Below, one piece after another: positions 24,191 through 58,449 of a DNA stretch of 64,000 bases. Within the stretch, counting starts at the first letter, position 1. Each line of letters starts with the position of its first letter. A model generated the notes under the pieces. The model made no database searches. It worked only from the letters and a program-made list of their open reading frames with translations, and was not told where the DNA came from. Source of the DNA: Oculina patagonica (lineage: Eukaryota). The position numbers were made by a program, and so were the translations under genes. The stretch is taken from positions 3,844,001 through 3,908,000 of the forward strand of contig NC_135761.1 of assembly GCF_052425735.1 (NCBI RefSeq). The letters are read 5' to 3'.

Positions 24191-27100
24191 TTAAGGATCG
24201 TCTTCTAAGTAGAGATCGAGAAAATCTCTTTCAGAGTCTTCTTCAGAGTCAGAAATACTCATCGCCTCCGCCGTGTCATCCTCGACTGAGGATGTAAGAA
24301 GTTGAGATGCCGAAGGGATTTGTTCAAGTGGAGGTAGACGTGTCTCAGCTGTCTCTACTTTGCTTGTTCCTGTTGCCGTCAAAGGCTTCAACGACATTGC
24401 AGAGACCAGTCCACAGAGTTTTATCACGCACACTCGACCAGAAGATGTAAAACAAACAGCTTTGTCTTCTTCAGGGGATACGGCCATGGTTAAAATGCTG
24501 TCCCGACCTTGTGTTACTCTTGCAAATCCAACAGCTTTCGACTCGGTAAGGTCCCACAGGAAAACCATACCATCAACACCGTAGGAAATAAGGTAACGAT
24601 TTACTTTTAAAAATCGGCAAAACTCAATTCTACCAAGATGGCCGCGAAGAACTTGCTTGGAGGAATAGATATCGGAAGCTTGAAGACTGTAGACAAGAAT
24701 TATGTCTGCGATGCAGCATACTAGAAACTGATCATCTAATGATACAGTGCAGTAGCTGAACTTGACAGAGTTGTAAGGCTTCCCGACTGCGAGTCTTGTA
24801 AGAAAGCGGCAGCTTTGTTCAGCGTACTGCCAGATCTCAATCTGGTACTCACCGCACAAGACTATTTCTCGTCTATTTGACGAAAGGCAACAACATTCTA
24901 CATCCAGGAAGCCCTGGTGATTCGAAAGAAACCAAAAAAACTTCCTTTTGAACATCCCACAGGTAGAAATATGAATTGTTTCTGTTATCCTGGAGACAAA
25001 AGAAAAGTACGGTGTTGTCAGCTGAAAATGCAAAGTATGGAACCGTGGACTCGCATTTGGATTCAAATACTGAGTGTAGAAATTTTGCTCTAGATTCTGC
25101 AAAACTGTACAACTCTACCTTGGTTCCCTGGTGAATAGCAATTAGCTTTCCATCTGAGGAGAGGGCACAATTCTCCACACGGAGCGCCTGCAGGACCAGA
25201 TTATGTCAACGACGACCCAGAAACAAAGGCGATGCCTTCTTTATCAGCAGAAGTCGTCATGTGCCATAACGTAACCATGGAGTCAGAACCAACAGATATA
25301 ACAGTATCACTTGAAAGGAACATCGCTGCAATGGAGTTTCCTACAAATGAATTTTTTACAGGCGATACTGAAAGAAACTTGAAAGGACTGAATAAATTTG
25401 TCAAAAAGATGGCTCTTTCTTCGATGTCGCTACGAAACAAATAACCAACCTCCCTTTCTCTTTTAAAGTAGTTAAGGTTACAGCCCGTTACACTTGTGAG
25501 AACTGTCCCTGTCTGGAGAGATAAGGCATGCAGTGAGCCCTCACAGGAATATACAAGATATAGATTATCATTCGTAAAGGAAAAGCTCCTGCACTCTCTA
25601 ATGGTGTGTTCTAGCTTTCCGTGATGAATAAAATAGGGATCTTGATTTCCTGTTTGCAAGGAAAGCAATTTCAGTGAATCACCAGCTTCGACTATCCATT
25701 TCGTTTCTGGTGACACACAAATACGAATTTCCCCGTTTAGTTCATAAACGAGATCCTGAAAACCTTTAGGAATATTTGTATAAACGCCAATCTTGAATGC
25801 CTCGTTGTGGAACTGTTTGAACAACCCAGTGGATACTAAACGTTTCCACTTCAGGCCCAGCTTCTCCAGCACCTCAGTCTGCGGTCTTAGTTTCTGCCAG
25901 GGCTTTTCCCTGAGGTTAACTTTCTGCCTTAAAACCAGCATCCACTCAAGCCCCAGCTCCTGATGCTTTCCCAGCGTCTGCTGCAGCTTACGCCACAACT
26001 TCAGCGTATGACTCCCCCTCCCGCTCCCCCTTCCACTCCCGCTCCCACTCCATCTCCCACTCCTGCTCCATGCGCACCCACTCCCATTCCGACCCACGCT
26101 TCCACACCCGCATCCGCACCCACTCCAGCTCTCGCTTCCGCTCCCGCTTCCGCTCCCACTCCCGCTCCCGTTCCTGCTCCCACTCCCACTCTCGCTTCCA
26201 CTTCCGCTCCCACTCCTCCTCCATACGCTTCCAATCCATGTGCTCCGACTCCCATTTAAACGACCAATCCGACACCAACTTCCGTTTATGCTCCCACTCC
26301 TGCTTCCACTCGCACTCCTGCTTCCATTTTAACCTCCGCTTCCACTCTAGCTCCAACGCACGCCCGAAATAAAAACCACCAAGCAAAGCACAGCAAACAA
26401 CAGTTACTGCAGCAATGTTACAAACTGACATGGCTTTCTCTATACCAGAACAACCCATTAGCAGTCCACATTCACTGTAAGCACAGGCAACATGGCACAA
26501 ATAAGTGAACGGGTTGAGCTGAACACCCTGTGAAAATACTTGCTGTAACACAGGCATCCCAGTCTGTAGATCCCAAACCTGATAATTAAATATGCAAGGG
26601 TAGAGTTCAACCACAAGTTCTCGTACAGCTTTCAAGGATGATTCTTGACTAGAATCTGTTAATTCTTTAAGTCTGCAGCAGAAATGACAAGAAGAATCGC
26701 CCAGAACGAAAGTCTCACGAGCCTGACTCAAGTTTTTCCTCATTCCAAGACGTTCGAGCAAGCATTCGATTTGCACTCCTGGCACACGACACAGCACTTG
26801 TGGACAAAAACTGACAGTCATCTCATCATTTCGGCTTTGCTCAATCTCCTTCACAGCCCACAGAGCAAGTAAGTTAAACAAACAACACTTGTCTTGACAG
26901 GTACCTGGGTTGGACAAGAAACGGTCCTTTTCACGACAATGGATTGTCCATCACGAGTAAACACTCCCCATTTATAGATATGAGAATTCCCAGAGAAGTG
27001 AGGAAAGTCCTCGACAGATCCTTGCTCAACAGAAAACCACTTGTCGAGCCGTCCAAAAAATATGAACTTTCCGTCTGGAGAAAACTCCAACTGGGCAATC

Positions 27101-28854
27101 TCATCAATGAGATCGTCGCTTACTTCAAAGGGACCCTTCACAGTTTCTGCTGTAGCTGCATCAAAGAATAAGATAGACCGACCTTTTGCTCCGACCACTG
27201 TCCTCTTATCAGGAGATGCAGCAAAGCATTGCATGTCAGCTATTTTGGGGTCAGGAAAAGGATAAACATTCCACTCCAACCAAGGAGCGGACACTTGAGG
27301 AATCAAAAGTGTCTCTTGGACAACGTTTGAAGCGTTTCGTATACATGACTGTAAAAGATGTGGGCATTCTAAGAGAACAAGTACATTACTTTCAAGAACA
27401 AATAATATTTCTTTGAGAACCTCTTGTTTCTTTACCTCTTCGAAAGCAAGGCAGTCAGCTGCAAGCTTAAGATCTTCCAGCAGATGATAAATCTCAATTC
27501 TTCCGCTTAGCATCCTCCTCTCTATGAAATGATAACTTGTTAAGCAGCTAAAAACAGCTTTCAGGGAATCATTATCACCATACTTGCACAAAAAGCGAAC
27601 CGCGACGCGGGAAACATAGTCCTTCAAATCGACGTCAATGGATGGGCATGTTGGCTGTGGTTCATTCACAGCAACAGAAGAGAATTTCATAAAAAATCTT
27701 TCTGAGGTACTCACCTGCGATCTTCTTGTCGATGAACAACTTCCGAGAAGCTTTGTTCTTGTCTGTCAGCCACGCTGGGACCAGATTGTGCAGGAAAGTT
27801 AATGTCTGATCAGATGTTCGTAACACCACAAATTGTGATACAGCATCGATCACTTGTTGCTCCTCGTGGTTTGATTTCTCTCTCTTTAGAATGTAAGAAA
27901 TGATTGAAACAGGAAGCGGAGAAGGGGCTACGACGGCACAACCAAACAGCTTCTTGAAGAGATCATGTCCCACTTGACCATAGACGCGCGTAAAATTCTG
28001 CAGAAAAAAATCGTCAATATCCCCAGGGAAAAGATCGCTCAAATGGTTTAGTATCTTGCCTGAATCCACAGAAAGCTTGAGCTCTTCCACAATGTAATGT
28101 GCATACAAGAACAAGCCATGACACTTTCTTGCTATATCTTCTACCGTGCAAGACAATCGAGGAAAATCGATTCTCTTTTTCAGAAATGTTTGGATATCCT
28201 GCTCATGCTGCTGATAGAAGTTGTGTTGATCGCTGTTCCCAGCGCAAATTTTAACACAGGGATTGTACTTTTTCAATCTAAACTGCACTGAATCTTCAGG
28301 GCGACTGGTAATAAAGAACACAAGCCATTCGGGAAGCAGGGGAAAACGGTGCATTATAAGGTCAAGGAAATCTTCCCTGGACTCGTACTCTGTCTCATCT
28401 AGAGCGTCAATAATCACTAATTTTCTCTTCTGATTCAGGTTACACTTAGCCAGTGGCTCTTGTAATAATTTTGTAAACAGTTCCTGAATACCTAGTTTGG
28501 AATTGCCTAGCATTTTTCTTACGCCACCCTCCCCTCCCACAATAGTATTGTACTGACTATTGCATTCACAGAGTTGACAAGCAACAGTCCCCAGAAGATA
28601 CCTGGGATCATTTCTTGTGCCATCGTTGTGACGGCAGAAGTAGGCAGCTCCTAAGTGTCCAGTCCTCCTCATGCGCTGTGCCAGCACTCCCGCCATAACA
28701 CTTTTGCCAACTCCTGGATCGCCTAGGAGTACATACGCTCGGGAATCGCCTGGATCGTGGAACCAAGCATCAAAATCGTCAAAAAACCACTGTCTTGTAT
28801 CTGAATCATGTCGTTTGGCAAAAAATGCAATGTCACCCTCAAAACTGGCGATCT
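24191..28854 (-). pseudogene. Paralog B terminal exon: NACHT/STAND NTPase + helical region + WD40 repeats, broken into six ORF pieces
   Basis: ttttcag acceptor, phase 1; TRQWFF..W, Walker A GDPGVGKS, AAYFC, Walker B LVIIDALDE, ITSRP, GLFLYA; WD40-like FSPDGK, SSDGK, LRGHLGRIEFC..DGMVFLWD; frame breaks near 27695, 26930, 26010, 25200, 24910. Confidence 0.8.
25850..26350 (-). repeat. Low-complexity hexamer-based (GAGTGG/GAGCGG) coding repeat within the WD40 region
   Basis: Encodes EWKQEWEHKRK...WEWEQEREREWERKRE; open in several frames. Confidence 0.75.
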
Positions 28855-29203
28855 CTGAAAACAACAGAAACGTTACATGATTAATTTCTGTTTTTCGCGT
28901 AGATTTGAAACCGCCTGTTTATTTCCGCATAAAAACTTGTCCCATTTTTAAGATTAGGGCAAATTTACGCACTGTGAAATAACAGTTGCATTTTCACGCC
29001 TGATTGTTTTCTGTGCTATTTTTTTCACGTCAGCTTGATAGAACTGAGAGATTTTGGGAAAACCTTTGTTTGGGTTTATCATAAATGGGACTACTCCTGT
29101 AGTGTTTTGTCCTGGCTCAAACGATTGAGTCGATATCTCTAAACTTATACTCTCATGAACTTTATAATTTTTATTTTGCACGGCAATAGAACGTCCAAAG
29201 CAC

Positions 29204-29230
29204 GACAACAACAACAACAACAACAACAAC
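29204..29230 (+). repeat. (CAA)n microsatellite
   Basis: acaacaacaacaacaacaacaacaac. Confidence 0.85.
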
Positions 29231-29806
29231 GAAAAACATCTTACCAACGGACACGTTGTTGTGGTCCTGCTGGGACACTGCATTTGCTAGACCTTCATAC
29301 GTTCGATTGTTCACTGGAAAAATTACAACTACACAGTCAAACTAACGTATATTTTTTCAGAGAAACCATCGTTTTTCATTCTCCTTAGCCTCATTTTAGT
29401 ACATGTATAACAGATTTTGATTTCCAGTTGCTGCCAATAGGATAGTACATTTGCAGCTCCAAGTAATGAAATAAGCAATTCGTGGTTTTCCATGTTCTTT
29501 AATGTTCTTAAAAGTTAAAAATCACCGCGTAACTCAACAGTCAACGCACTCGGGCGCAGGGACTGTTCCCTTAATTCTTGATATATACAAGTTAGAATTT
29601 TAAACTATAGTGGACTGAGTAGAGTACAGTAAAGTAGACAACGGCGCTGGTAATGATAAATCTGCTTTACGTTAAAAGAACCCAGTCGATTTAACTTTGA
29701 AATTAAACTGAACTGAAATTGCTTCTCGAATTGCACTCCAGTCAGCCTAAAAATGTCACCGACATCTCTTAGATAATCAATCAAATGAATGCTTCACTGT
29801 GTATAC

Positions 29807-32800
29807 TGTGACTGTGGCCAGCCCAGTCTGCGCGCGGTCAAGATTCGCGCCATTTTCGGTCACGTGACCAGTTTGTTTAACTAGCGTGGTCTTACAGTTT
29901 GACTCAAGTTTATCGAAGGATTTATCGCTCGTTTAGCGTGTTTTCCGTCCCTTTCGCGGTCCCAAAGGCTGGACAAGGTTAGCTGTGTTCTTTTACTTGT
30001 ATCTTAGGTTTAGCTAGTTTCGTAATATTTTGTATTTCGGACTTTATTTCGTTGTATGTTATGTCGCTCGCTCGTGTATTCGCTTCGGTTGTTTAGTATT
30101 GTTATTATTTTACTTTATTTTAGTTTTACGGTTCCTGTTAGTTACCAGTAAAGACTTCCAGACAGATCAGCTATAACTACTTTGGTTCGTTTAACCTATG
30201 TCGGTAGTTACAGTAAAACTTGCTTGCACGAACTGAACTTCGAAGAATTCTTGAGTAGAATTTGGAAAATCCGGACGCGGATAGGGACTGTTGGATTAGA
30301 GTTTCGGATCGCTAGGTCAGATGGAATCGTTGGATACCCCTGGCCCCAGCTTAGTAATTGAAGATAATAGAAATTCAGCATCGTTTATGCCGAAGAATAA
30401 TGAAGATGAGCTTGAAGAAGCCAAAGAAGATGTATCAGATCACATTGAAGACCCTGATGGGCTTGAAGAACCCAAAGAAACAGATTTGTTAGACCAAAAT
30501 GAAGATAATGCCCGTCAGAAGAGTAAACGACCTCACACTTTGACCAAGAAGGGTCTGGAATACCAGTGGTTGATAAAAGAAAAGGATTTTCAAAGAGCTT
30601 TAAGAAGAATGAAGGACAAACTGCACAAACTTGACATGGATTGGATTGACATTTCAGACCCTCATATCCTCAGAAAGGAGAGATCAGACATAGAACAATT
30701 CAGACAATACTTGGTTAGGGCACAATCAGAATATGTATCATTGTTGACTGGAGATGAAATTCATCGTGTAGTGGAGCTATCAGCGTGTTTGAATAAGCAA
30801 GTAGTTGAACTGAGAATGAGAATTGGCGAGAAAATCTTCCAGCTGGAAAAAGAAGAATTGTGCTCCCGTACTAGTAAAAGATCATCCTACTCGAAGAAGA
30901 CAGCCTCGACTCGTGTCTCAAAGGGATCAGCCTCGTCCCAAGTTTCCCTTCTTAAAATGAAGGCTCTAACTGAACTAGCCAAAAGAGAAGTTGAAATGAA
31001 GTTTGCACGAATAGAATCAGAAAAAAGGTTGGAAATGGAAAGAAAGAGGCACGAGATGGAAGAGATCCAAAAAATGAAGAGCTATGAGACTGCCAAGGCT
31101 GAAGTCGATGCCGTTACAAGGCTAGAAGATGAAGGAAAGGAAGAAAACCCAAATTTAGATGACCTAAAAGAGTTTCAGCTGAAGGATGATGAGAAAGAAG
31201 AGCGTGTACGTGATTATATATCTTCACTGCCAGACCTGAGATCTGTAGACAGCTTAATACCCTTACCAGACTCGTTCGTCCAAGGTAACAGAGCCCATCG
31301 TCGCACCCCTTCATCTCAGAAAGAAAAGGACACAGAGTTATCTAACGCAGACCAAATTCCCCAGGCTCCAGGCAAGGATCAGGGCAATTCAGCCGGTAAA
31401 CAATTAGTCACACCACCCCATCTGCATGTCAACAGTTCAGCCACTCCTTACAGCACACCACCGACAATCCCTTATTGTCCTCCCACCATGGAATCACAGC
31501 AACATGGGATTGCCCAAGCAATAGCAAAGGGAATGGAAGCTGCGAGGTTGCCAACTCCTCACCTCTCAATTTTCAGTGGTAACCCCTTAGATTGGCCTAC
31601 ATGGAAAGTTTCTTTCGAAACTGTTATTGAAAAAAGGTCAATGAGCTCCAATGAAAAAATCCTGTACCTGCTACAGTATCTATCAGGCCCACCTAAGAAG
31701 ATTGTTGAAGGATACCAGTTTCTTAAAACAGATGACGCCTACACTGAAGCAAAGAAATCTCTTGAAAAGCGATTTGGTCACCCCTCTGTAGTCGCAGAAG
31801 CATTCCGAAGAAAACTGGAAAATTGGCCAAAGATTCCTCCAAGAGATGGGATTTCACTGAGAGAATTTGCAGACTTCCTGAAAACATGTGAGCTGGCTAT
31901 GCAATCAGTAGAAGATCTTGAAACCCTCAACAAGCAACACGGCAACAAGCAGTTATTGAAGATCTTGCCAAACTGGGTACATCCTAAATGGGGAGTTAAG
32001 GTACGAGACTACCAGACAAAGTATGGAGAAAACAAGTTTCCCCCGTTCTCGGCGTTCGTTAAATTTGTTACTGAGATTGCCGAGGTACAATGCCTGCCTG
32101 TCCTTACGAACTTGGACTCAAACTTTTCAGTGAAAGAAGAGAAGAGGAGAAATTTTCAAAGAAGAACTGAAAATCGTAAAAGCAGAGATGTAAATTCCCT
32201 GGCTACGCAAGTTAAAGGCCCTTCTGATTCCATGAACGGAAAGAAGAAAGCGTGTTATTGGTGTGGAAATGCATCCCATGAGTTAGAAATGTGCCAAGAG
32301 TTTGTCAAGAAACCCATCAATGAAAGAACCCAGTTCATCATTAGAAAGGGACTTTGCCTTCGCTGCCTAGTTCATGGTCATATGGCAAAAGAGAACAAGT
32401 GTGAAAAACTACTTAGTTGCGTAAGATGTAAGCAGAAGCATCCAACCTGCCTGCATGACAACAGGAGAGCACCTGAAGGTACAGATAGATCAGATAAAGC
32501 TACACCTGAAGCAGCAGTGAAATTTACAAATGCGGTTGATACAGAGAACTTGCAATGCAGTGAAAGTGATGCAACAGCGAACTGCACTAACATTTGCTCC
32601 ATCAAAGGGCAACAGTCTGGTCAGGATCAAAGTTTAATCATCCCAGTATGGGTTTCCAGCGGCGAAAGGCCTCAAAATGATGTCCTGACTTATGCTCTTA
32701 TTGATTCTCAATCCAATGCTACTTTTATCACCGAGAAGTTGAAACAAGCCTTAGAGGTCGACGGCGTAGCAAGTCACCTTCGTCTGTCAACAATGCATCA

Positions 32801-35800
32801 AGAAGATGAAGTAATTGAATGCAAGAAAGTTCAAGGTCTTAGTGTTACAGACTTAAAACGCCAGGTTCACATCCCCTTGCCAAAGGTCTACACAAGAGAC
32901 AGCATTCCTTACAAACCCCATCAAATTCCAAAGCCAGAAGTTGCCATGCAGTGGGATCACCTAAAGTGTATTGCTGAAGAACTTATGCCATATAGAGAAG
33001 ATGTACAGGTTGGAATATTGATTGGAACGAACTGCCCAAAGGCAATCAAACCGCGAGAAGTTATTCCTGGAGGAGATCACGACCCGTACGGCATAAAAAC
33101 AGATCTTGGTTGGGGTATTGTTGGAAGAGTGTGCAAGTCAAATCCAGATGAAGACTTAGAACAACTTACAGAAAGTTGGGCCAACAAGATTGTAATCAAT
33201 GAAGATGCCACATTTGCGATGGAGTCCCGAGCAAAGGAAATTGTAAATCCAGCTCAGATCAATGAGATGTTCGAAAGAGACTTCCACGAAAGAACAGAAC
33301 TCAAAGGTTCATCAACCTTGTCAGTTGAAGATCGCACATTCCTGGAAATCTTAAATAAAGGGATCCACCAAAGGGAGGATGGGCATTACGAGATGCCGTT
33401 GCCATTGCGCTCTCTAGATGTTAAGTTGCCGAACAATCGATCGCAAGCATTGAGAAGGCTGTCTCAGTTGAAGGCACGATTTCAAAAAGATCCGAAGTAT
33501 CACAGAGACTATGTTAAATTCATGGAAGAGATGATTGAAAAGTGCGCAGAAAAGGTTCCCTCTCAAGCCGAAACCGGTATCAACATTGGAGATGGCAAGA
33601 TTAACTATGTCCCACACCACGGAGTCTACCATCCGAAGAAACCCAGCCAAATAAGAGTGGTTTTTGATTGTAGTGCAAAATACAAAGGCACATCCCTGAA
33701 CAAGAACTTGCTCCAAGGGCCCGATCTGACAAACAATTTAGTGGGCGTACTCTGCCGATTCCGCCAGGAGGCTGTGGCTTTGACATGTGATGTACAAGGA
33801 ATGTTTCACCAGTTCTTCGTAGACGAGACAGACCGAGATCTCCTCAGATTCTTTTGGTGGAAGCATGGAGATTTTAAGAATGAAGCGGAAGAGTATCGCA
33901 TGAAAGTACACCTGTTTGGTGCTACTTCTTCACCTGGATGTGCAAATTTTGCTTTCAAAAGGGCCGCAGACGATGGCGAGAAAGAGTTTGGTTCAGAAGC
34001 CGCAGACTTCATGCGAAAGGATTTTTACGTCGACGATGGACTGAAGTCTGTAAAATGTGTTGACACTGCCACCAACCTTATTCAGAATTGTCAAGCCATG
34101 TGTGCAAGGGCAGGCCTGAGACTGCACAAGTTTAGCAGCAACAAGAAAGAAGTTATTCAAGCTGTTCCCCCCGAAGATCGTGCCAAGGGATTACAGGAAC
34201 TAGATCTGACGAGAGACCCTTTGCCAATAGAGCAAACTCTCGGCGTTATGTGGTGCGCAGAGACTGACAGTTTACAATTCCGTATAGTCATTCAAGACCG
34301 CCCACTTACAAGAAGAGGCATCTTATCCACAGTTTGTTCGGTCTACGACCCCCTTGGGCTTGTAGCACCCCTAATCCTTACTGGCAAGCAGATATTACAA
34401 GACCTTTGTCGTGAAAATGCTGACTGGGATGACCCGATCAGTGATGAGCTAAGGTCAAGATGGGAACGATGGCGAAATGAGGTACGACTCCTTGAAGGTC
34501 TCAAGATACCAAGATGCTACAAACCTGAAGATTTTGGAGACATTAAGGCGGTCGAACTGCATCACTTCTCTGATGCAAGTCAAGCAGGCTATGGTCAGTG
34601 CAGCTACCTGCGCTTGTTGAATGAAAGCAATCAAGCCTATTGTTCCTTAGTTATGGGAAAAGCCCGCGTTGCTCCTCTGAAACCAGTGACCATCCCACGC
34701 CTAGAGTTGACGGCAGCCGTCGTATCAGTCAGAGTGAGTCAATGGCTTGTACCAGAGCTCGATTACGAAAACGTTACTGAGTTCTTTTGGACAGACAGCA
34801 AGGTAGTGATGGGCTACATAAGCAATGTGACCAGACGCTTTCACATTTTTGTAGCCAACCGCGTACAACAGATCCATGAGCATACCAAACCTCAACAATG
34901 GCAGTACATCAACACACATTCAAACCCTGCAGATGCTGCATCCCGAGGTCTTACGACCAAACAGCTCTTAAGTGATGATTCACAATGGCTTAGAGGCCCC
35001 AGCTTCCTGTGGAACTGTGGTCCTTATCGAGTCCAAGAAGAGAACACTCCAGAACCCTTAGATCCAAACGATCCAGAAGTCAAGGCGTGTACCCTCGTAA
35101 CACAGAGCGACGAGAGCTATCCTAATTACTTTGAAACTGCCAGGTTGGATCGATTTTCCGATTGGTCTAGAGTGAGAAAAGCAGTAGCAGTGTGCTTGCG
35201 GTTTAAACGTCTTCTAAGAGAGAAAAGATTCCAGAAAACTGCAGTGGCTCAAACCAGTACAGCAGTGAAGAATAATGGCACAAGCTACCAACCTGTAGAC
35301 ATAGAAGAGATTGGTCAAGCTGAGATGGAAATAATTCGCTGCCTTCAGCTTGAACATTTCAAAGATGAAATCGAAGCTCTGTCCCTGCTGCAAGTGCATG
35401 GCGAATTCTCTGATAGACAGAAAGCCAAGCAAAGAAATCTCAACCTGAAGAAATGTAGCAGTCTTTATCGCCTAGATCCGTACTTAGACGTGAACGGTAT
35501 CCTGCGTGTTGGTGGCCGACTGAGGAGGGCCAATATGCCCGAAGCTTCTAAGCATCCAATCATTTTACCAAGGCGATCACATGTTACAACCCTCATCCTA
35601 CAGCACTGTCATGAAGCAATCAAGCATCAAGGTAGTGGAATGACCCACAACGAAGTACGACAACGTGGGTACTGGATCATTGGTGGCACGTCCGCTGTAT
35701 CGAGTTTTATTTCAAAGTGTATCAAGTGCCGAAAGCTGCGTGGACCACTCGTGCAGCAAAAGTTAGCAGACCTCCCAGAAGATCGTGTAGATCCAGCCCC

Positions 35801-37416
35801 TCCATTTGCATACTGCGCAGTTGATTACTTTGGTCCATTTCTAATAAAGGATGGCCGCAAGAAGGTTAAAAGATACGGTGTAGTCTTCACGTGCATGGCG
35901 TCCCGTGCCATTCATCTCGAGTCTGCAAATACGCTAGACACCGACTCCTTCATTAATGCTGTGAGACGTTTTCAAGCCGAGCGTGGTCCAATCCGCCAGC
36001 TGAGGTCAGACCGTGGATCGAATTTCGTTGGCGCCCAGAGAGAATTGCAAGAAGCTCTGAACGAGATGGATGAAAACAAGGTACGCAGCACTTTGATTGA
36101 AGAGAATTGCGAATGGTTTTCATTCAAAATGAATCCACCCTCGGCAAGCCATATGGGAGGATCCTGGGAACGGCAAATAAGGACAGTCAGAAGTGTTCTC
36201 GCAGCACTGTTGGCAGTAAGTGGTCGTCAGTTGGACGATGAAAGCTTCCGTACGTTACTAAAAGAGATCCAGGCAGTAGTGAATTCCAGACCACTAGCCT
36301 TGAATGACATGTCTTCAGTTGATTCGCCAGAGCCGCTGACTCCAAATCACTTACTGACCATGAAAAGCAAGGTTCTAATGTCACCTCCAGGCATCTTTCA
36401 AAGAGAAGATATCTACCTTCGCAGAAGATGGAGAAGAGTTCAACACCTGACGAATGCATTTTGGGAAAGATGGAGAAAGGAGTTCCTTAGTACACTTCAA
36501 CTTCGCAAGAAGTGGATCACACCCAAACGCAACATGGCAGTGAATGATGTCGTCTTGATGAAGGACGAAAATGCCCCAAGAAATGCTTGGCGTTTAGCAA
36601 GAGAAGTATTCCCAAGCAAGGATGGCCTAGTGAGAAAGGTTAAACTCGCCATGGCTGCTCGCAGTCTTGACAAGAATGGAAAGAGAATCGAGGCAGTACA
36701 GTTTCTTGATCGACCTGTCCATAAGCTTGTTCTTATCCAGGAAGGAGACCGGGAATTCCCCGACGAGGAGCCAGAGGAGCCACAAGTTAAGACAAGTACT
36801 GACTGAAGGAGCGGTATAGACGGAAGGAGCAGTACTAATCATAGGAACATTACTTACTGAAAAAGCAGTTTATTAATGTAGACCTGGAACTGTTATCTAG
36901 AAACTGCGAACTGATAGTTGATTTTGTTTCGCCGAATTATTATTTGAGTTTTGAGAATCGTTAGAACATTTGACTTTGTAAGGACAGTGGATTCCCACTG
37001 TGGGGAGCCATGTGACTGTAGCCAGCCCAGTCTGCGCGCGGTCAAGATTCGCGCCATTTTCGGTCACGTGACCAGTTTGTTTAACTAGCGTGGTCTTACA
37101 GTTTGACTCAAGTTTATCGAAGGATTTATCGCTCGTTTAGCGTGTTTTCCGTCCCTTTCGCGGTCCCAAAGGCTGGACAAGGTTAGCTGTGTTCTTTTAC
37201 TTGTATCTTAGGTTTAGCTAGTTTCGTAATATTTTGTATTTCGGACTTTATTTCGTTGTATGTTATGTCGCTCGCTCGTGTATTCGCTTCGGTTGTTTAG
37301 TATTGTTATTATTTTACTTTATTTTAGTTTTACGGTTCCTGTTAGTTACCAGTAAAGACTTCCAGACAGATCAGCTATAACTACTTTGGTTCGTTTAACC
37401 TATGTCGGTAGTTACA
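29807..37416 (+). mobile_element. Full-length Bel/Pao LTR retrotransposon 2, in intron 3 of paralog B, antisense to host
   Basis: 406-bp TG...CA LTRs (29807-30212, 37011-37416) with one mismatch seen; 5-bp TSD TATAC; purine tract GGGGAG before the 3' LTR. Confidence 0.95.
30321..36806 (+). CDS. Bel/Pao Gag-Pol polyprotein (2161 aa)
   Basis: FSGNPLDW gag region, C-x2-C knuckles, protease LIDSQS, RT YVDD, HHFSDAS, WTDS, integrase AVDYFGP/SDRGSNF/GGSWER. Confidence 0.95.
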   Translation: MESLDTPGPSLVIEDNRNSASFMPKNNEDELEEAKEDVSDHIEDPDGLEEPKETDLLDQNEDNARQKSKRPHTLTKKGLEYQWLIKEKDFQRALRRMKDKLHKLDMDWIDISDPHILRKERSDIEQFRQYLVRAQSEYVSLLTGDEIHRVVELSACLNKQVVELRMRIGEKIFQLEKEELCSRTSKRSSYSKKTASTRVSKGSASSQVSLLKMKALTELAKREVEMKFARIESEKRLEMERKRHEMEEIQKMKSYETAKAEVDAVTRLEDEGKEENPNLDDLKEFQLKDDEKEERVRDYISSLPDLRSVDSLIPLPDSFVQGNRAHRRTPSSQKEKDTELSNADQIPQAPGKDQGNSAGKQLVTPPHLHVNSSATPYSTPPTIPYCPPTMESQQHGIAQAIAKGMEAARLPTPHLSIFSGNPLDWPTWKVSFETVIEKRSMSSNEKILYLLQYLSGPPKKIVEGYQFLKTDDAYTEAKKSLEKRFGHPSVVAEAFRRKLENWPKIPPRDGISLREFADFLKTCELAMQSVEDLETLNKQHGNKQLLKILPNWVHPKWGVKVRDYQTKYGENKFPPFSAFVKFVTEIAEVQCLPVLTNLDSNFSVKEEKRRNFQRRTENRKSRDVNSLATQVKGPSDSMNGKKKACYWCGNASHELEMCQEFVKKPINERTQFIIRKGLCLRCLVHGHMAKENKCEKLLSCVRCKQKHPTCLHDNRRAPEGTDRSDKATPEAAVKFTNAVDTENLQCSESDATANCTNICSIKGQQSGQDQSLIIPVWVSSGERPQNDVLTYALIDSQSNATFITEKLKQALEVDGVASHLRLSTMHQEDEVIECKKVQGLSVTDLKRQVHIPLPKVYTRDSIPYKPHQIPKPEVAMQWDHLKCIAEELMPYREDVQVGILIGTNCPKAIKPREVIPGGDHDPYGIKTDLGWGIVGRVCKSNPDEDLEQLTESWANKIVINEDATFAMESRAKEIVNPAQINEMFERDFHERTELKGSSTLSVEDRTFLEILNKGIHQREDGHYEMPLPLRSLDVKLPNNRSQALRRLSQLKARFQKDPKYHRDYVKFMEEMIEKCAEKVPSQAETGINIGDGKINYVPHHGVYHPKKPSQIRVVFDCSAKYKGTSLNKNLLQGPDLTNNLVGVLCRFRQEAVALTCDVQGMFHQFFVDETDRDLLRFFWWKHGDFKNEAEEYRMKVHLFGATSSPGCANFAFKRAADDGEKEFGSEAADFMRKDFYVDDGLKSVKCVDTATNLIQNCQAMCARAGLRLHKFSSNKKEVIQAVPPEDRAKGLQELDLTRDPLPIEQTLGVMWCAETDSLQFRIVIQDRPLTRRGILSTVCSVYDPLGLVAPLILTGKQILQDLCRENADWDDPISDELRSRWERWRNEVRLLEGLKIPRCYKPEDFGDIKAVELHHFSDASQAGYGQCSYLRLLNESNQAYCSLVMGKARVAPLKPVTIPRLELTAAVVSVRVSQWLVPELDYENVTEFFWTDSKVVMGYISNVTRRFHIFVANRVQQIHEHTKPQQWQYINTHSNPADAASRGLTTKQLLSDDSQWLRGPSFLWNCGPYRVQEENTPEPLDPNDPEVKACTLVTQSDESYPNYFETARLDRFSDWSRVRKAVAVCLRFKRLLREKRFQKTAVAQTSTAVKNNGTSYQPVDIEEIGQAEMEIIRCLQLEHFKDEIEALSLLQVHGEFSDRQKAKQRNLNLKKCSSLYRLDPYLDVNGILRVGGRLRRANMPEASKHPIILPRRSHVTTLILQHCHEAIKHQGSGMTHNEVRQRGYWIIGGTSAVSSFISKCIKCRKLRGPLVQQKLADLPEDRVDPAPPFAYCAVDYFGPFLIKDGRKKVKRYGVVFTCMASRAIHLESANTLDTDSFINAVRRFQAERGPIRQLRSDRGSNFVGAQRELQEALNEMDENKVRSTLIEENCEWFSFKMNPPSASHMGGSWERQIRTVRSVLAALLAVSGRQLDDESFRTLLKEIQAVVNSRPLALNDMSSVDSPEPLTPNHLLTMKSKVLMSPPGIFQREDIYLRRRWRRVQHLTNAFWERWRKEFLSTLQLRKKWITPKRNMAVNDVVLMKDENAPRNAWRLAREVFPSKDGLVRKVKLAMAARSLDKNGKRIEAVQFLDRPVHKLVLIQEGDREFPDEEPEEPQVKTSTD

Positions 37417-37427
37417 TATACACTTAC

Positions 37428-37754
37428 CTTGGTTTTCTAAAACAGAAGCACAACTCAGTTTGTCTTCCACACGTGCAACTCGTTGTTGCACATCTTCCAC
37501 ATCAGTGTGCAAGCAATCCATTCTCTTCGACAGTTCTTGTTTAATGACCTCTTGTTCACGCTGTACACTCCTCACTCTTTCTTCCAGTTCCTCAAGACTT
37601 GTTGAAATCTCCTTTAGGGCCTGTGATACTCGTTCCCTAACCCCCTCCACTTCAAATGTCAACTGCTCTACATCTGTCTTCAGTATGTTAACATGCTGTT
37701 GTACCAACTTCAACAGATCAGGGTCCATAGTAGCATTCAAACACAGCATCGTGC
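37428..37754 (-). CDS. Paralog B, coding exon 3: coiled-coil region
   Basis: attaaag acceptor, GTAAGT donor at 37427; 327 bp, phase 1; joins in frame to 28854 (CAA G|AG ATC). Confidence 0.85.
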
Positions 37755-38475
37755 CTTTAATAACAAACAAGGAAGCAAACTATCACCAACTTTATTTCAC
37801 TTCTACGGCCACATTCCCACACGTTAGTTTCGAGATATGGGTCAGTCAGTCTACAGAATCCTTGCATTGAGACTTCTTGGGCGAGATGCTTCACTCTCCG
37901 CCCAGGCTCCAGTTGTTCAAAGGGTGGATAACGCTATGCACCAGATAAATTACTATCCGGTGGATAGCAAAGTAGGATTTGTTTGAGAGTTATCCACTGG
38001 ATAGCGATTTATCCAGTACATAGCGTTATCCACCTCCACCCCCGTGGATAATTTTTTAAGGGTAGCCTAAAAACATGCTGGAGGGTGGGGAGAGGAGGAG
38101 GAGTCACTTCTGTGCTAGTCATGAACCGAAGAAAACTTCGACATTGTTGAAATGCCTTGCCAAACCTTGGGCAAGGGAAAGACTTCGCCAGCCTACCAGA
38201 TCCTATCGCTGGGGTGGTGAGCTTAATTGAGGAATGAAAGTAAAACAGCAAAGATACTTTCACAAGCCAGATAGAAGCATGGATACAGATGAATTAAAGG
38301 CTAGAATCGAAGAAATTAGGGTTACTAATGAAACACCGATATTTTGCAAAAAGAGCGTTTCATAAACTTAAGAGCTTCAACTTAACGCAGGTTTGACCTG
38401 AGATAATTTACTGATATGGACTGAGACTAAAGGTAATGTGGGTTTCATGGAGATCCTAATGCATACGGGTACTAT

Positions 38476-39508
38476 CACAGGTAGCCAAAGCTTAAGATAC
38501 GACTGAAAATAAATAAAATGATCTGAAAAATTAATAAAATGATCTGAAATTATCAACTGCTTATTGTTTTATCTATCTTCTATTACATATTCATGTGAGC
38601 TTTGTTCTACGAGTGAAAATTAGCATAATATATGCTAATACTAAAATTGCTCTCAACTAACAAAGCGAAGCGAAAGGTCGCACACTCGAGCCGTCAGAAT
38701 GCCGACCCATGTTCACAAAATGAGGTGTAATTCTCAAAGTTTGCCATTTCTCACCCAAAACGCCTCAAATTCATAGGCTACGATAATCATCCTGAAAATA
38801 CATACCGAAAAATTGCCCAATGTTACATCCTTTCCCTGTTAAAATGACATTATTTCAGTGGTAAACCTCAACGAACCATCCGTGGCCCAAGTTCTTCTGC
38901 ATTTAATCATATGCAATTTGGAACAACAAAAGCCACTTTCTAGGGGAGGTGTATGGAATTTTGTTTGTTTACTTCTCATCCCTGAGCTCATGAATATGAG
39001 GTCATCATGTGTTGCACGAGACATTCCGTACACCTCCCCTAGAAATAGTGGCTTTTGTGGTTCCAAATTGCATATGATTAAATGCAGAAGAGCTCGGGCC
39101 ACGGATGGTTCGTTGAGGTTTACCACTGAAATAATGTCATTTTAACGGGGAAAGGATGTAACATTGGGCAATTTTTCGGTATGTATTTTCAGGATGATTA
39201 TCGTAGCCTATTAATTTGAGGCGTTTTGGGTGAGAAATGGCAAACTTTGAGAATTACAGCTCATTTTGTGAACATGGGTCGGCATTCTGACGGCTCGAGT
39301 GTGCGACCTTTCGCTTCGCTTTGTTAGTTGAGAGCAATTTTAGTATTAGCATATATTATGCTAATTTTCACTCGTAGAACAAAGCTCACATGAATATGTA
39401 ATAGAAGATAGATAAAACAATAAGCAGTTGATAATTTCAGATCATTTTATTAATTTTTCAGATCATTTTATTTATTTTCAGTCGTATCTTAAGCTTTGGC
39501 TACCTGTG
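38476..39508. mobile_element. 1033-bp foldback element, CACAGG termini, 7-bp TSD GTACTAT (Galileo/P-like)
   Basis: ~480-bp nearly perfect inverted arms with spacer ~38960-39022; TSD at 38469-38475 and 39509-39515. Confidence 0.85.
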
Positions 39509-39571
39509 GTACTATTTATACAGTGCAATGTTTGGAAAAGAAAAAGGTAAATGCAGAAATCGGGCACGTAC

Positions 39572-40167
39572 CTTTCGTCTCCCATTCTTTTAATTCACTC
39601 AAAACATTTCCCTCAGTGGCAGGTAACAGACCCAGGGCTTTCACTAGCTGTTCCATCTCAGCAAACCTCTGCTGAAAGTTTAATGGATCCCAGTCACTGA
39701 ACACACAGTGTGCCCAGGCATTTCTAGCTTTTCTGACATCACCAGCAGCACTCTGTACAGCATGAGAAAAGACTGGGACTTTACCAAGCAGAGCAAGCAC
39801 AGCAGATGCATCACAGTGTTCATCAAACGCGTTAAACTTGGCCATGTGGTTCTCTACATAGAGCTTGGCAAAATCAACATGTGATGTCACCCGGCAGTCA
39901 AACAAGGAGTAATTGTATTTTCTACCTGACAGCCTGGGATGTGCATCATTACCATTGATGTTCTCGTACTTTAAGAATGTTAGCCAATTCTTCAGTCGCC
40001 CAAATGTGCTCTGAGTATGAATGCTGTGGCTGGTTTGAAGATTGCCATACTCCTTCTGAACTTCTTGTTCTACAAACGAACGTATTTGGGTCACGAGAAC
40101 CTTACTGAGTGCAATTCCAAACACCAACCATCTTTTCTGGTTGTCTGTGACACCAACCAGAGTGGAC
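39572..40167 (-). CDS. Paralog B, coding exon 2: HEPN-like (CXorf38/DUF4559-like) domain
   Basis: tttttag acceptor, GTACGT donor; 596 bp; HCDASAVLALL...RNAWAH (R-x4-H at 39708-39725). Confidence 0.8.
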
Positions 40168-50072: not shown

Positions 50073-50111
50073 AACCTTCAGCTAGCAGAAGGAGAAAGAA
50101 CAGAACTAGCA

Positions 50112-52838: not shown

Positions 52839-53416
52839 ACTGCTTATTGTGACAGTGTCACTTTGCTTGTTTTTACCAAAGTTTTAAATAATTTTCTAAG
52901 CTATTTTAGAAATAGTTTTCTTGTACTGTCGTTTTTTTTTATCCGTGCCTGTTCGTATGTTGCAGACGGACCAGACAGACCTCACCAGAAGTTTTCGATG
53001 TGAGTAGAGGTCAGATCACGTATTGTAGAACTCGCTAGTATGTAGTGACACTGTGGAGTGGTAGTGGGTACACCCAGTTCCGTGGACTGACATTCTCTCC
53101 ACGTCAGGAGGCGATCCTGACATGTGATCTCGTTCCGCACAGACAGTGTGAGACGAGTGTGAGGAGCTGTGGAGCCTCCAGAGGGGACCTGATGGCCGAG
53201 TTATGCGTGCTGCACAGGCGATTTGAGTCTCCCACAGTGTTCCTTCTGTAGGCCAGCCCTCGCGCACGGCGAGCCACATAAGGTCAGCGCACGCGCGGGC
53301 CCCGCAGGCCCCGCCGGGCGCGACCGCTCGCGTCGCACGGCTTACATTATACTAATCATTTAATTATATATAACCATAACAATCATCGCCAAGCCAACCT
53401 GGCACTCATTACTGTT

Positions 53417-54214
53417 AGAAATATTGACACAACAAGTTTGTTAAGAGTTAGTTGTTCCAGTGTTTAATTTGGGTGACACTGGTTAAAGAACCACTGTCTT
53501 CTCAAGAAATATTGACACAACAAGTTTGTTAAGAGTTAGTTGTTCCAGTGTTTAATTTGGGTGACAGTAGTTAAAGAACCACTGTCTTGTCAAGAAATAT
53601 TGACACAACAAGTTTGTTAAGAGTTAGTTGTTCTAGTGTTTAATTTGGGTGACAGTAGTTAAAGAACCACTGTCTTCTCAAGAAATATTGACACAACAAG
53701 TTTCTTAAGAGTTAGTTGTTCCAGTGTTTAATTTGGGTGACACTGGTTAATTAAAGAACCACTGTCTTCTCAAGAAATATTGACACAACAAGTTTGTTAA
53801 GAGTTAGTTGTTCCAGTGTTTAATTTGGGTGACACTGGTAGTTAAAGAACCACTGTCTTGTCAAGAAATATTGACACAACAAGTTTGTTAAGAGTTAGTT
53901 GTTCCAGTGTTTAATTTGGGTGACAGTAGTTAAAGAACCACTGTCTTGTCAAGAAATATTGACACAACAAGTTTGTTAAGAGTTAGTTGTTCCAGTGTTT
54001 AATTTGGGTGACAGTAGTTAAAGAACCACTGTCTTGTCAAGAAATATTGACACAACAAGTTTGTTAAGAGTTAGTTGTTCCAGTGTTTAATTTGGGTGAC
54101 AGTAGTTCAAGAACCACTGTCTTGTCAAGAAATATTGACACAACAAGTTTGTTAAGAGTTAGTTGTTCCAGTGTTTAATTTGGGTGAAAGTGGTTAAAGA
54201 ACCACTGTCTTGTC
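53417..54214 (+). repeat. 88-bp tandem array, 9 copies, inside the Helentron
   Basis: Unit starts (agaaatattgacacaac) at 53417, 53505, 53593, 53681, 53773, 53864, 53952, 54040, 54128. Confidence 0.95.
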
Positions 54215-54865
54215 ACTAATAAATATATCACATTGAGTTCTTATAAGGTCAATAGATTCTGTCTTTTTCGTTGTTGTTAAAACGCTACCATTGTGACAAT
54301 GATTCCAAATACAACTAACGGTAACCAGTGAGATAACGCCACTAAAAGAATCACATTGAGTTCATTGAGATTTTTTTATAATGTTAAGAGTTACTGTTTT
54401 TTATCAAAGAGACAATCATGTCAGACATTACGTTAACTTACTAGCAATTAAATTATGTTTGCTGCCTTTGATTTCAACATAACATAGATCAGTAAAATTA
54501 TCAGGATTGAATTAACACAAAGTGACTACAATATAGTGCAATTATTCACCTGCACACAAGTGACAGACAATAAAAGACGTTGGATTTCAATCTCGACTCA
54601 CTTGTCTTTCATCAACATGTTCCCTAAGACTTTGCTCTAGCAGCAAAACACATGGACCCATTGGGGCCCTATTTTTGTAATCTGTATTCCTGCATAAATA
54701 AATTTTATTGTGGCTATAAGTCTGATTTGTTGTTCACTAACAACACCAGAACCTGCCTCGGTCACATTTGGCGCTGCGAGCAGGGTACAAAAAGAAACCA
54801 ATTTTAAAAAATCAGCAATTTTACAAAAAGGGTGGTTGCAATAACAGGACAAGGATCAAATCACC

Positions 54866-55909
54866 ATGACTACAGAGGAGTTATCAACCAAAGTGGATGA
54901 GTTGACCAAGATGTACAAAGAGGCAATGGAAGAACTAAAGGCCCTGAAGGAATCTACCAACTCGACTCAAGTGTCATCCTCAGAACCAGCAAAAGAAATT
55001 GGCACAAAGCAGAAACAAATTGTTGTCTTTCCCCGGGACAAGAAGATTAAGAACTTCACTGGGAAAAAGACAGAAGGCGACCAACCAGTTGAAGACTTTA
55101 TAGAAGAACTCAGGACAACCTTCGAAGCGAGAGAAATGACCTCACCCGAGAAAGTGGACTTCATAATGTCTCACCTGGATGGACCAGCTAAAGAAGAGAT
55201 ACGAATGTACAGCAAGAAGGAGCGAAGCAACCCAGACTTTCTTCTAGATGTTCTGGCACAAGCATTTGGAGAGAAATGGTCCAGCTCCCAACTCCTGAAG
55301 ATGTTCTATGAGCGCAAGCAGAAAGAAAACGAAACACTTCGAGGGTACTCGTACAGCTTGAATGAACTACTCAAGCGTGCCACTAAAGCAGATCCGAAGG
55401 CAGTCCCTGACCCAGAGAAGACTCTACGGGACCAATTTGCAGACAATGTGAGGGATCCCTTTCTTAGGAAGGAACTGAAGAAGTTCATCAGAGAGCGTCA
55501 ACCCCCATTCTTAGATTTGAGGGAGGAAGCATTACGTTGGTCAGAAGAGGAGGAAAGACCACAGCGTATCATGCCCAGGCCCCAACCATCACAGGAAGTA
55601 GTGGCTGACATCCCAGATGAGAGTTCTCAGTGTAGTGCTAGCTCCACCACCACCCCGATGGATAAGGTATTGGAGGTCCTGCTCAAGCAGCAGAAGTCCC
55701 TAGAAGAACTGACGAGTTCGATTAGAGATATCAAGCAGCCAAGGACCCATATCCCGCCCAAGGAATGGAGTGGACGGCGCCCTGATATTGTTTGTTTCAA
55801 TTGCAACAAGAAGGGACATATTGCCAGAAACTGCCAGGTGAATAATGACCGTTTTGTCAGGAGAGGACCACCACAAGGTAGACAGCACCCTGACAAGTCA
55901 TCAAACTAA
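54866..55909 (+). CDS. Gypsy Gag (capsid-like + CCHC knuckle)
   Basis: Follows PBS; QKENETLRGYS major-homology-like region; CFNCNKKGHIARNC. Confidence 0.9.
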   Translation: MTTEELSTKVDELTKMYKEAMEELKALKESTNSTQVSSSEPAKEIGTKQKQIVVFPRDKKIKNFTGKKTEGDQPVEDFIEELRTTFEAREMTSPEKVDFIMSHLDGPAKEEIRMYSKKERSNPDFLLDVLAQAFGEKWSSSQLLKMFYERKQKENETLRGYSYSLNELLKRATKADPKAVPDPEKTLRDQFADNVRDPFLRKELKKFIRERQPPFLDLREEALRWSEEEERPQRIMPRPQPSQEVVADIPDESSQCSASSTTTPMDKVLEVLLKQQKSLEELTSSIRDIKQPRTHIPPKEWSGRRPDIVCFNCNKKGHIARNCQVNNDRFVRRGPPQGRQHPDKSSN

Positions 55910-55932
55910 CTCCCTCTGCCACAAGGAGCCAA

Positions 55933-56907
55933 GTGACAGCAGGGAACAACAGTGGCTCAAATATGGATATGTCAAGAATGTATGAGAAAGCAGTTGGAGA
56001 GTGCCCAGTGACCTCAGTACGACTGGGTGGAGTAGACGTACCTTGCCTCTTGGACTCAGGATCTGAAGTATCCACAATCACAGAAGAGTTTTTCAATGAA
56101 CACTTTCGCCCTCAAGGAAAAACACTTTTACCTACCGGCGATTGGTTAAGATTGACAGCAGCGAATGGATTGGAGATTCCATATGTCGGATACGTAGAAC
56201 TGGACGTTGAAGCCTTGGGAGTCATGATCCCACAAAGAGGAATTTTAGTCGTTAAGAGTCCAGCGAGTGAAGAGGCCAGGCAACGTAAGAAGATAACCCC
56301 TGGATTAATTGGAATGAACATTATTTCCCAACTGCAAGGACCATACAAAAATGGAAAAACGCAAATTTCCCCCGAATGGAGTAAAGTACTTAAGATTGTT
56401 TCCTGTGCCAAACCTATTTCAGTACGTGGTTTTGCGAAAGTAGCCGGCAAGTCCCAGGTTAGAATTCCAGCCGGATCTGTTTCTGTAGTCCGAATAACTG
56501 GATGGCATGGACCCCAAACGAGCAACACAGCTGCGCTTGTGGAGCCATTAAGTGGACAAACGCCGGGAAACTTGATTGTCATAAATACAGTTACCTGTGT
56601 AGTTAATGGACAACTTCATGTAAGAGTTGCAAACATTACTGGTGAAGATGTCTGGCTTCAACCCCATACAAGAATAGGAGTACTTCATGAGATTAATGAT
56701 GTTATGGATACTAAAAACACTGTTGACTTCAAGAGAGTTTCAATTAATGAAGAGATGGTGTTTGTCAGAGAATCCACAACAGAACAAGAGCGAACACAGC
56801 CCTCAGTATGTCCAATTGATCTGTCAGCTGTAGAGTGCACACCTGAACAAAGAGGAAAACAGCTGGAAAACACAAGAACAAGTTTAAGGAACCAAAAACT
56901 GCAGTAA
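55933..56907 (+). CDS. Truncated Gypsy Pol (aspartic protease only), -1 frame relative to gag
   Basis: CLLDSGSEVS, LTAANGLEIPYVG, LIGMN; no RT/RNase H/integrase before the 3' LTR. Confidence 0.85.
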   Translation: MTAGNNSGSNMDMSRMYEKAVGECPVTSVRLGGVDVPCLLDSGSEVSTITEEFFNEHFRPQGKTLLPTGDWLRLTAANGLEIPYVGYVELDVEALGVMIPQRGILVVKSPASEEARQRKKITPGLIGMNIISQLQGPYKNGKTQISPEWSKVLKIVSCAKPISVRGFAKVAGKSQVRIPAGSVSVVRITGWHGPQTSNTAALVEPLSGQTPGNLIVINTVTCVVNGQLHVRVANITGEDVWLQPHTRIGVLHEINDVMDTKNTVDFKRVSINEEMVFVRESTTEQERTQPSVCPIDLSAVECTPEQRGKQLENTRTSLRNQKLQ

Positions 56908-57751
56908 CCAGTTCCATAACTATTACAGTCAATGAACTTTCAATATATTTAGTAATATCGACTTTATTAATTCTGTATGGACTATATATTCAGAATTTAG
57001 TACGTAATTATTAACCATTAGCACACATGTCGTGGACGACAGTGTTAAGCAGGGGAGTGTGTGACCAGGTTCACAAAAAAACGTGACACTGCATTTTTAG
57101 TATAAATTTAGAATTACAGTTTAGTAGAAACTATTTCCTTTCTTTACTGAATCAACCCACATAATCTAACCACACAGGATTTACATCATGAATTTCCTAT
57201 ATGTCACACCACCACACCTTGTATTAGAATCATAAGAATTTCCTTCTATTGTTTGTCTCCTAATAAAAGAAGTGCAGTTAGTTAGTTTAATTCAGTAGTT
57301 CAAAGTGTTCAAGACCTGCACTTACAAGCTGAGGACCCCTTGGTCAAGTACAGTACTATTCCTTGTGACCTAAGTCAGTGATTCATTTCACTCAGGATTT
57401 TGTTTGCAATCACCCTTTTTCTTTTTGTAATCTGTATTCCTGCATAAATAAATTTTATTGTGGCTATAAGTCTGATTTGTTGTTCACTAACAACACCAGA
57501 ACCTGCCTCGGTCACATCATGCAGGCACTGCCTGTTCATGCCAAGTAAGATGTTGTTCACCTGTTGTTTATTGACTTGATTATTCCTCGCGAAGCGAGGC
57601 CGAAGGCCGAGCGTAGCGGGGTGTATAATTTTGTCCCTCAAAGGGATCAGGCGGGATGAAATCTCGTGTGGAGTTTACGGTCATATATATTTCTATATAT
57701 ATATATTTGTGAGCTTGGTGTGTGGCGGAAATGACGTCACACGGCCGCCGC

Positions 57752-57845
57752 GCGCTGGTGGCCTAATGGTAAGGCGTCGAACTTGAAATCAGATCTTCGG
57801 AACTGAGGTCGGGGGTTCGAATCCGGCTAGTTTTTTTTTTTTTTC
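57752..57845 (+). other. tRNA-derived Pol III-like unit (SINE head or pseudo-tRNA)
   Basis: A box TGGCCTAATGG (57759-57769), B box GGTTCGAATCC (57814-57824), poly-T; no complete cloverleaf. Confidence 0.5.
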
Positions 57846-58420
57846 TTTTTTCTTTCTTTTTTTTTGTGGGTTCGAATCCTGAGCCTTTCATTTTTATCGT
57901 TTTTCTTTTCGGATTAAAATAACATTGATTTCCACATAATACTCCCTCAACGCCTATTCAGGCTATAAATCTTTCATCGCCATCAGGGGCGCGCGGGCGG
58001 AGGCTTCGCATCCTCCTGCCGTTCGTTCTTTTTTTTTTTTTTAATGCCATCAAATAAATGTCCAAAATGCGACTATCCAATAATTTGTCGATGATTTTGA
58101 AAATAACCTGCGCTTCCCAACGCTTTATACCTCTTTACGAACCAGAAAAGCCACCATCTTCAAAGCGGAGTAGACCCTGGGAACGAGGGTGTCGCGGCCA
58201 TGCCCGTTGAAATTTCTAACAAATATATCTTCCTGCCTACTGTGGAAAATTGAATATGTACAATTCAATAAATGTTCAACTTCAAACAATCCACTCCTTA
58301 TTTATAACCCCCCCCCCTCCCCAACCCAGAGCTTCGCGAGGCCCTGCGAGTCACGTATTACTAGTATATATTTTTAAGCCAGTTTTGATAAGCTTAAACA
58401 TGATGTCGAACTGCACTTAC

Positions 58421-58449
58421 CCTCCTGACAGCCCAGCTGCTGTCGCCAT
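58421..58449 (-). CDS. Paralog B, coding exon 1 (start micro-exon MATAAGLSGG; exon with UTR 58421-58510)
   Basis: ATG GCG ACA GCA GCT GGG CTG TCA GGA GG|GTAAGT, phase 2, in frame with 40167; context homologous to 6780-6930. Confidence 0.75.

Follow-up and report, generated by a model that had tools for sequence, protein, structure and literature searches.

The 64,000-nt stretch of DNA analyzed here (the window) is taken from the forward strand of Oculina patagonica contig NC_135761.1, positions 3,844,001-3,908,000, and all positions below use window numbering. Its minus strand carries a gene of five coding exons that encodes about 1,890 residues (Table 1). The encoded parts are, in order, a HEPN-like domain, a coiled coil, a short linker, a NACHT domain of the NPHP3_N type and two WD40-type beta-propeller regions. 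We favor, with reasonable confidence, the view that the locus holds a copy, interrupted as assembled, of an NLR-like STAND family that has expanded in anthozoans and whose members would work as ligand-gated ribonucleases (RNases).

On inspection of the sequence, exons 1 to 3 are bounded by canonical GT/AG sites in compatible phases, and RNA contigs from related samples or species (93–99% alike to the window) show that these exons, together with a fourth designated 3b, are transcribed and spliced. The joint between exons 2 and 3 (37754|39572) is carried by contigs of three runs (X19, X25 and X18). Loose contig ends at 40168 (X19 and X25) match window positions 58422-58451 exactly, that is, exon 1 with its ATG. 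RNA depth is present on exon 2, and the intron is mostly free of it. A sequence-only reading of the same DNA had proposed a gene of four exons, and its first three, with their sites, phases and two joints, were recovered in full. However, it overlooked the 69-nt exon 3b and took the last exon for one continuous open reading frame (ORF), which it is not in this assembly.

The direct splice from exon 3 to 28854 assumed in that reading is absent from the RNA contigs. Instead, exon 3 joins exon 3b: the sole RNA contig seen leaving exon 3 runs to 29312/3, and its loose end matches 29283-29312. Exon 3b has no stop in the phase set by exon 3 and leaves that phase unchanged for 28854. L002, which is the 96%-identical counterpart of a neighboring paralogue in an independent assembly (GCA_044670265.1), has a homologous exon of 66 nt, bounded by AG/GT sites, after its coiled-coil exon and before its NACHT exon. 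The NCBI gene model P0210 of Desmophyllum pertusum likewise has homologous residues (..YEGPANMVSQQYHSSVSV..) at this place, past the coiled coil and ahead of the NACHT exon. The onward junction from exon 3b to 28854 was not seen directly in the RNA contigs and is placed on the basis of phase, site strength and conservation. To look for a spliced transcript, the beginning of the NACHT exon was searched by exact match in JGI metagenome contigs, and 0 matches were found. The N-termini of 120 NACHT homologues were set aside as a clue to the upstream exon because they are genomic ORF calls that run into the intron and are thus uninformative on splicing.

The unobserved junction would also fit two separate genes, one for a short HEPN-coiled coil protein and one for a NACHT-WD40 protein with its own start, and many database relatives are indeed short (200–440 aa). 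Most of these short relatives are, however, ORFs called on genomic contigs and run into introns. Moreover, no ATG precedes the P-loop in the NACHT ORF, which begins at a strong acceptor in the phase of exons 3 and 3b, and gene models from other corals (P0121, P0026, P0210 and a 1646-aa neighbor in the octocoral L001) unite HEPN or a coiled coil with NPHP3_N in a single protein. We consider the two-gene arrangement very improbable.

Table 1. Features of the window, with the positions and evidence for each.
Feature	Position	Strand	Evidence
Exon 1	58421..58449	-	29 nt, ATG, phase-2 end; GT donor; matching RNA ends
Exon 2, entire HEPN-like domain	39572..40167	-	sub-cut-off Pfam matches, AlphaFold2 model, Foldseek, RNA depth
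RNAWAH, R-x4-H motif (residues 148-153 of exon 2 translation)	39708..39725	-	translation; conservation
Exon 3, coiled coil	37428..37754	-	coiled-coil Pfam matches; RNA joint 37754|39572
Exon 3b, 69 nt, 23 codons, in frame	29245..29313	-	RNA loose end, AG acceptor, GTAAGA donor, conservation
Last exon: NACHT, helical/winged-helix part, beta-propeller, low-complexity linker, beta-propeller, acidic tail	24191..28854	-	six open pieces
NACHT module	27665..28852	-	Pfam NPHP3_N E 3.8e-28, 99.2 bits against cut-off 24.8; HTH_TANC1 E 6e-4
Walker A, GDPGVGKS	28723-28700	-	motif translation
Walker B, LVIIDALDE	28420-28394	-	motif translation
Sensor 1, FFITSRP	28318-28298	-	motif translation
Frame change 1	27677	-	~55 homologues continuous across
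Frame change 2	26923..26924	-	length difference in X1, X4, X9; P0200, P0237, P0250, P0270 continuous
Hexamer microsatellite CTCCCG (+ strand), ~34 copies	26012..26326	-	Tandem Repeats Finder (TRF)
Frame change 3, edge of hexamer repeat	26010	-	P0235 continuous across
Frame change 4	25190	-	flanking pieces in one frame in octocoral L001
Frame change 5	24911	-	length difference in X1; C-terminal pieces in one frame in L001
C-terminal WD40-type beta-propeller and acidic tail	24194..25114	-	19 beta-propeller/WD40 Pfam families
BEL/Pao long terminal repeat (LTR) retrotransposon, most of intron after exon 3	29807..37416	+	LTRs, target duplication, ORF
Second BEL/Pao polyprotein ORF, 1956 aa, between paralogues	10559-16429		intact ORF
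Paralogue exon 1, 14 nt	6838-6825	-	ATG, GTAAGT donor, same phase, homologous upstream region
Paralogue exon 2, RNAWGH, 71% aa identity	2075..2670	-	sequence comparison
Paralogue exon 3	~1093-749	-	sequence comparison

For the domain encoded by exon 2, an exhaustive HMMER search returned 395 cluster representatives, of which 234 had E < 1e-10. In a 63-sequence alignment of the family, R148, N149, W151, H153 and C154 show little or no variation, and the members match the Pfam families HEPN_Swt1 (22 of 63, best E 5.3e-8) and DUF4559 (19 of 63). Among the 150 best matches, counting only domains that cover the motif, R is kept in 126 of 134, H in 126 of 132, the two together in 121 of 132, and the N following R in 127 of 133. 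The R-x4-H motif that the sequence-only reading had pointed out in both paralogues is therefore conserved well beyond them. An AlphaFold2 model of exon 2 computed from the 63-sequence alignment (pLDDT, the predicted local distance difference test, 95.3) is predicted to be all-helical with an all-alpha core of paired helical hairpins (helices 8-47, 120-129, 135-152, 161-178 and 182-196). In this model, R148-N149-x-W-x-H153 is at the C-terminus of helix 135-152 and enters the loop before the next helix. This is the position given in the definition of the HEPN motif, at the end of helix 3 with a polar residue after R (PMC3710099).

Structural comparison with Foldseek, a check proposed along with the original prediction, matched CXorf38, DZIP3-like HEPN and Swt1-like HEPN proteins. 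In Swiss-Prot, only human and mouse CXorf38 were significant, and human CXorf38 (Q8TB03) was the top match (E 1.5e-3, probability 1.0, template modeling (TM) score by query 0.67, residues 11-198 against 16-211). The first matches among AlphaFold DB clusters were coral and mussel proteins named as DZIP3-like HEPN, NB-ARC or NACHT domain-containing, followed by fish CXorf38 homologues and then by bacterial Swt1-like HEPN; the named HEPN clusters had probability 1.0. Neighbors of exon 2 in the ESM Atlas carry HEPN_DZIP3, DUF4559 and HEPN_Swt1. These comparisons of sequence and of a predicted structure support the assignment of exon 2 as a HEPN domain of the CXorf38/DZIP3-like kind with a putative catalytic-type motif, R-N-x-W-x-H. 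The HEPN-coiled coil cassette also heads NACHT-LRR, NB-ARC-TPR-beta-helix, nSTAND3-ankyrin and NPHP3_N proteins, and the HEPN-like domain is additionally found with Roc-COR and with a kinase plus the KEN RNase. One such relative (P0030, 826 aa) carries, besides the HEPN-like domain, a protein kinase and a Ribonuclease 2-5A (KEN) domain, and thus resembles Ire1 or RNase L with a second, N-terminal HEPN. The domain is C-terminal in P0040 and P0058, and a domain scan of P0040 showed a CAP-Gly-Roc-COR protein.

The remaining domains agree with the coiled coil, NACHT and beta-propeller order originally read from the sequence. Exon 3 matches many coiled-coil Pfam families (E 1e-6 to 1e-2). The NACHT domain is of the NPHP3_N type and, judging from its motifs, apparently NTPase competent. 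Matches to the C-terminal propeller reach E 9e-9, with the WD40 repeat itself at E 3.9e-5. Between the two propeller regions, the CTCCCG array forms a low-complexity linker rich in E, W, R and K that is about 160 aa longer than in the homologue P0235. The array varies structurally between samples, with alternative joints in both DNA and RNA contigs. The hexamer-repeat stretch may be an intron, as RNA depth is absent over 25882-26205, but DNA contigs of another sample carry it. In homologues the propellers are in one frame, while in the window they are severed from NACHT by frame changes.

The frame of the last exon changes five times, contrary to the single open exon proposed before, and instead of one intact protein the joined coding sequence holds 44 stops in the assembly. 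Its six open pieces were analyzed separately. Short-read contigs of another sample (DNA run X1) are of a different length from the window at 27677, 26923-4, 26010, 25190 and 24911, by 1, 2, 1, 1 and 1 letters, respectively; these places are exactly the five frame changes, and each difference is of the size needed to explain the change. The difference at 26923 recurs in RNA contigs of two further organisms (X4 and X9). Homologues on other contigs read through the breaks (about 55 across the first, several across the second and one across the third); L002 is continuous across the first two, and all C-terminal pieces are in one frame in L001, which comprises two tandem octocoral homologues. The ancestral state was therefore one large exon, and the copy is either a very recently dead allele or the result of a local consensus error. 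As assembled, its maximal product could be a HEPN-coiled coil-NACHT protein of about 735 residues that lacks the sensor.

Several features bear on the choice between lesion and artefact. General indel noise in the assembly was ruled out as the cause because retrotransposon ORFs of 2161 and 1956 aa are unbroken in the same window: the copy has five frame changes in 4.66 kb against 12.4 kb of unbroken retrotransposon ORFs. This contrast speaks for a true, recently dead pseudogene without present function, lost to the birth-and-death turnover of a large family of NLR-like genes, as do a frame change within the NACHT domain of L002 and the D. pertusum model P0210, in which the start of the NACHT exon is out of frame. 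The L002 change falls at 7760-7775, just past the Walker B motif. On the other hand, none of the six pieces contains an in-frame stop, and the window's form of the breaks was found in 0 of 4 runs. In addition, each of the five extra letters is a G on the plus strand, outside any homopolymer (chance ~3e-4), which is odd for natural mutation; this pattern, without stops, is not what either ordinary mutation or ordinary assembly noise would give. We judge it about equally probable that the breaks exist in the animal that was sequenced and that they reflect a local consensus error, and give the pseudogene just short of an even chance.

HEPN RNases are active as dimers, and oligomerization activates RNase L and Ire1. 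By analogy with these enzymes and with STAND-WD40 proteins such as Apaf-1, a mechanism can be proposed in which the propellers would bind a ligand and thereby release the NACHT domain, which would oligomerize on nucleotide exchange. Oligomerization would in turn pair the N-terminal HEPN domains in the dimeric arrangement that HEPN RNases need, and cleavage of RNA would lead to an antiviral or cell-death outcome. It is conceivable, although we hold this only tentatively, that intact alleles are true ligand-gated RNase receptors in which NACHT oligomerization assembles RNA-cutting HEPN dimers, and that the broken copy is a variant in a presence/absence polymorphism such as NLR loci commonly have. 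If so, the family would provide the first demonstrated case of an animal NLR-type protein with an enzymatic effector of its own, paralleling bacterial STAND defence.

Besides the unobserved junction into the NACHT exon, a number of results weigh against a ligand-gated RNase receptor at this locus. The gene copy may be dead, and some of the RNA contigs may stem from paralogues because the family is multi-copy. The mechanism itself is a prediction from analogy, and a literature search found no biochemical work on CXorf38. Pfam matches to exon 2 itself are all below cut-off, with HEPN_Swt1 at E 5.4e-5 (23.9 bits against a cut-off of 27.5) and DUF4559 at E 2e-3 (18 bits against 27). As for kinship with CXorf38, the exon encodes three cysteines and no paired CxxC, so the zinc ribbon is absent. 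The CXorf38/DUF4559 pattern recognized earlier thus agrees with the fold match to CXorf38 but not with the DUF4559 cut-off or the zinc ribbon, and the domain is not a strict CXorf38 member. Searches of PDB chains with exon 2 and with the family profile gave only chance-level sequence matches. Foldseek against the PDB returned nothing at E < 1e-3, with the HEPN protein AbiF only at rank 50, and all matches in a wide VIA-align search had Z < 8, the noise zone for helical bundles. The C-terminal domain of yeast Swt1 gave the longest VIA-align alignment (Z 6.1), which we take as a hint only.

This closest resemblance to a solved structure is also compatible with a HEPN fold that serves as an RNA-binding or oligomerization adaptor rather than as a nuclease, with signaling through partner proteins. 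Some eukaryotic HEPN domains are listed as inactive or as binders only, that of Swt1 being marked as inactive (PMC3710099 Table 1), and the sacsin HEPN domain is reported to bind RNA. However, R, N and H are kept in more than 90% of over 130 diverged domains, which is the pattern of catalytic HEPN families, and the CXorf38 family is rated active (PMC3710099). An adaptor role is in our view unlikely.

The surroundings of the gene are rich in repeats. The BEL/Pao element that fills most of the intron after exon 3 has identical 406-bp TG..CA LTRs and is flanked by a 5-bp TATAC target duplication, and its 2161-aa ORF, with Peptidase_A17, is intact. It sits 11 nt beyond the exon 3 donor, looks very recent and is possibly still mobile. 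Another intronic stretch (37835-38028) has an RNA contig depth of 280–1660 in all four runs and is probably a highly expressed dispersed repeat. About 1 kb of the intron after exon 2 (38470-39514) is 94% identical to its own reverse complement, as in a foldback or palindromic element, and RNA contigs there show "opposite strands" joints. A gap of 500 N (23475-23974) begins 217 nt past the stop codon, so the 3' untranslated region and the spacer to the paralogue are incomplete.

The HEPN-NACHT combination and its RNase mechanism are not new, both having been proposed earlier for such fusions (PMC3710099, PMC8260672). Anantharaman et al. (2013, PMC3710099) described HEPN domains of the CXorf38 and DZIP3 families fused to NACHT, ankyrin, CARD and DEATH domains in cnidarians and cephalochordates, rated these fusions as active and proposed a defensive or apoptotic role like that of RNase L. 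HEPN-NACHT was later found to be the commonest non-LRR combination in 9 of 15 cnidarian species, with 17–83 proteins per anthozoan species (Emery et al. 2021, PMC8260672), and the 2023 paper on the Tara coral genomes notes the same (PMC10236652). HEPN-headed NLR-like proteins are thus among the commonest predicted coral immune receptors, and the locus adds a member to this known family. The copy is not intact as assembled, so annotating it or counting it in a repertoire as a full-length receptor would be wrong. The gene model of the subfamily, with a HEPN exon, a coiled-coil exon, a small linker exon and a single large NACHT-WD40 exon, nevertheless provides a concrete construct for an RNase assay.

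The closest known systems are the cnidarian HEPN-NACHT proteins, which likewise have an N-terminal HEPN domain, a NACHT domain and repeat sensors, are expanded in anthozoans and have been proposed to use an RNase effector. The surveys label the domain as DZIP3-like HEPN by Pfam, whereas in the present copy HEPN_Swt1 and DUF4559 are the only such matches and neither reaches its threshold. These surveys do not describe the coiled-coil stalk, 69-nt linker exon and WD40 sensor that mark the present subfamily, and the present copy is interrupted. Vertebrate CXorf38/DUF4559 is the best reviewed structural match and has R-x4-H at the same position, but identity is 15%, the DUF4559 score is sub-threshold, and the zinc ribbon inserted into the CXorf38 HEPN domain (PMC3710099 Table 1) is missing here. 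Moreover, CXorf38 is a short protein or a dsRBD fusion in vertebrates, not a STAND NTPase fusion. RNase L and Ire1 are functional analogues in that these KEN-type HEPN RNases are switched on by ligand-driven dimerization or oligomerization; they belong to another, circularly permuted HEPN family and use a pseudokinase or kinase with 2-5A or endoplasmic reticulum stress as the switch in place of a STAND NTPase. Apaf-1, NWD1 and fungal HNWD proteins share a STAND NTPase followed by WD40 propellers as sensor and autoinhibitor, but they carry death-fold, HET or other N-terminal domains, and the NTPase here is of the NPHP3_N type. Finally, bacterial HEPN-STAND proteins, in which HEPN is N-terminal to STAND (PMC3710099), and Avs-type STAND defence follow the same logic of effector, NTPase and repeat sensor. 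Here the resemblance is one of design and not of membership, and the sequence kinship seen in this analysis does not go beyond the superfamily.

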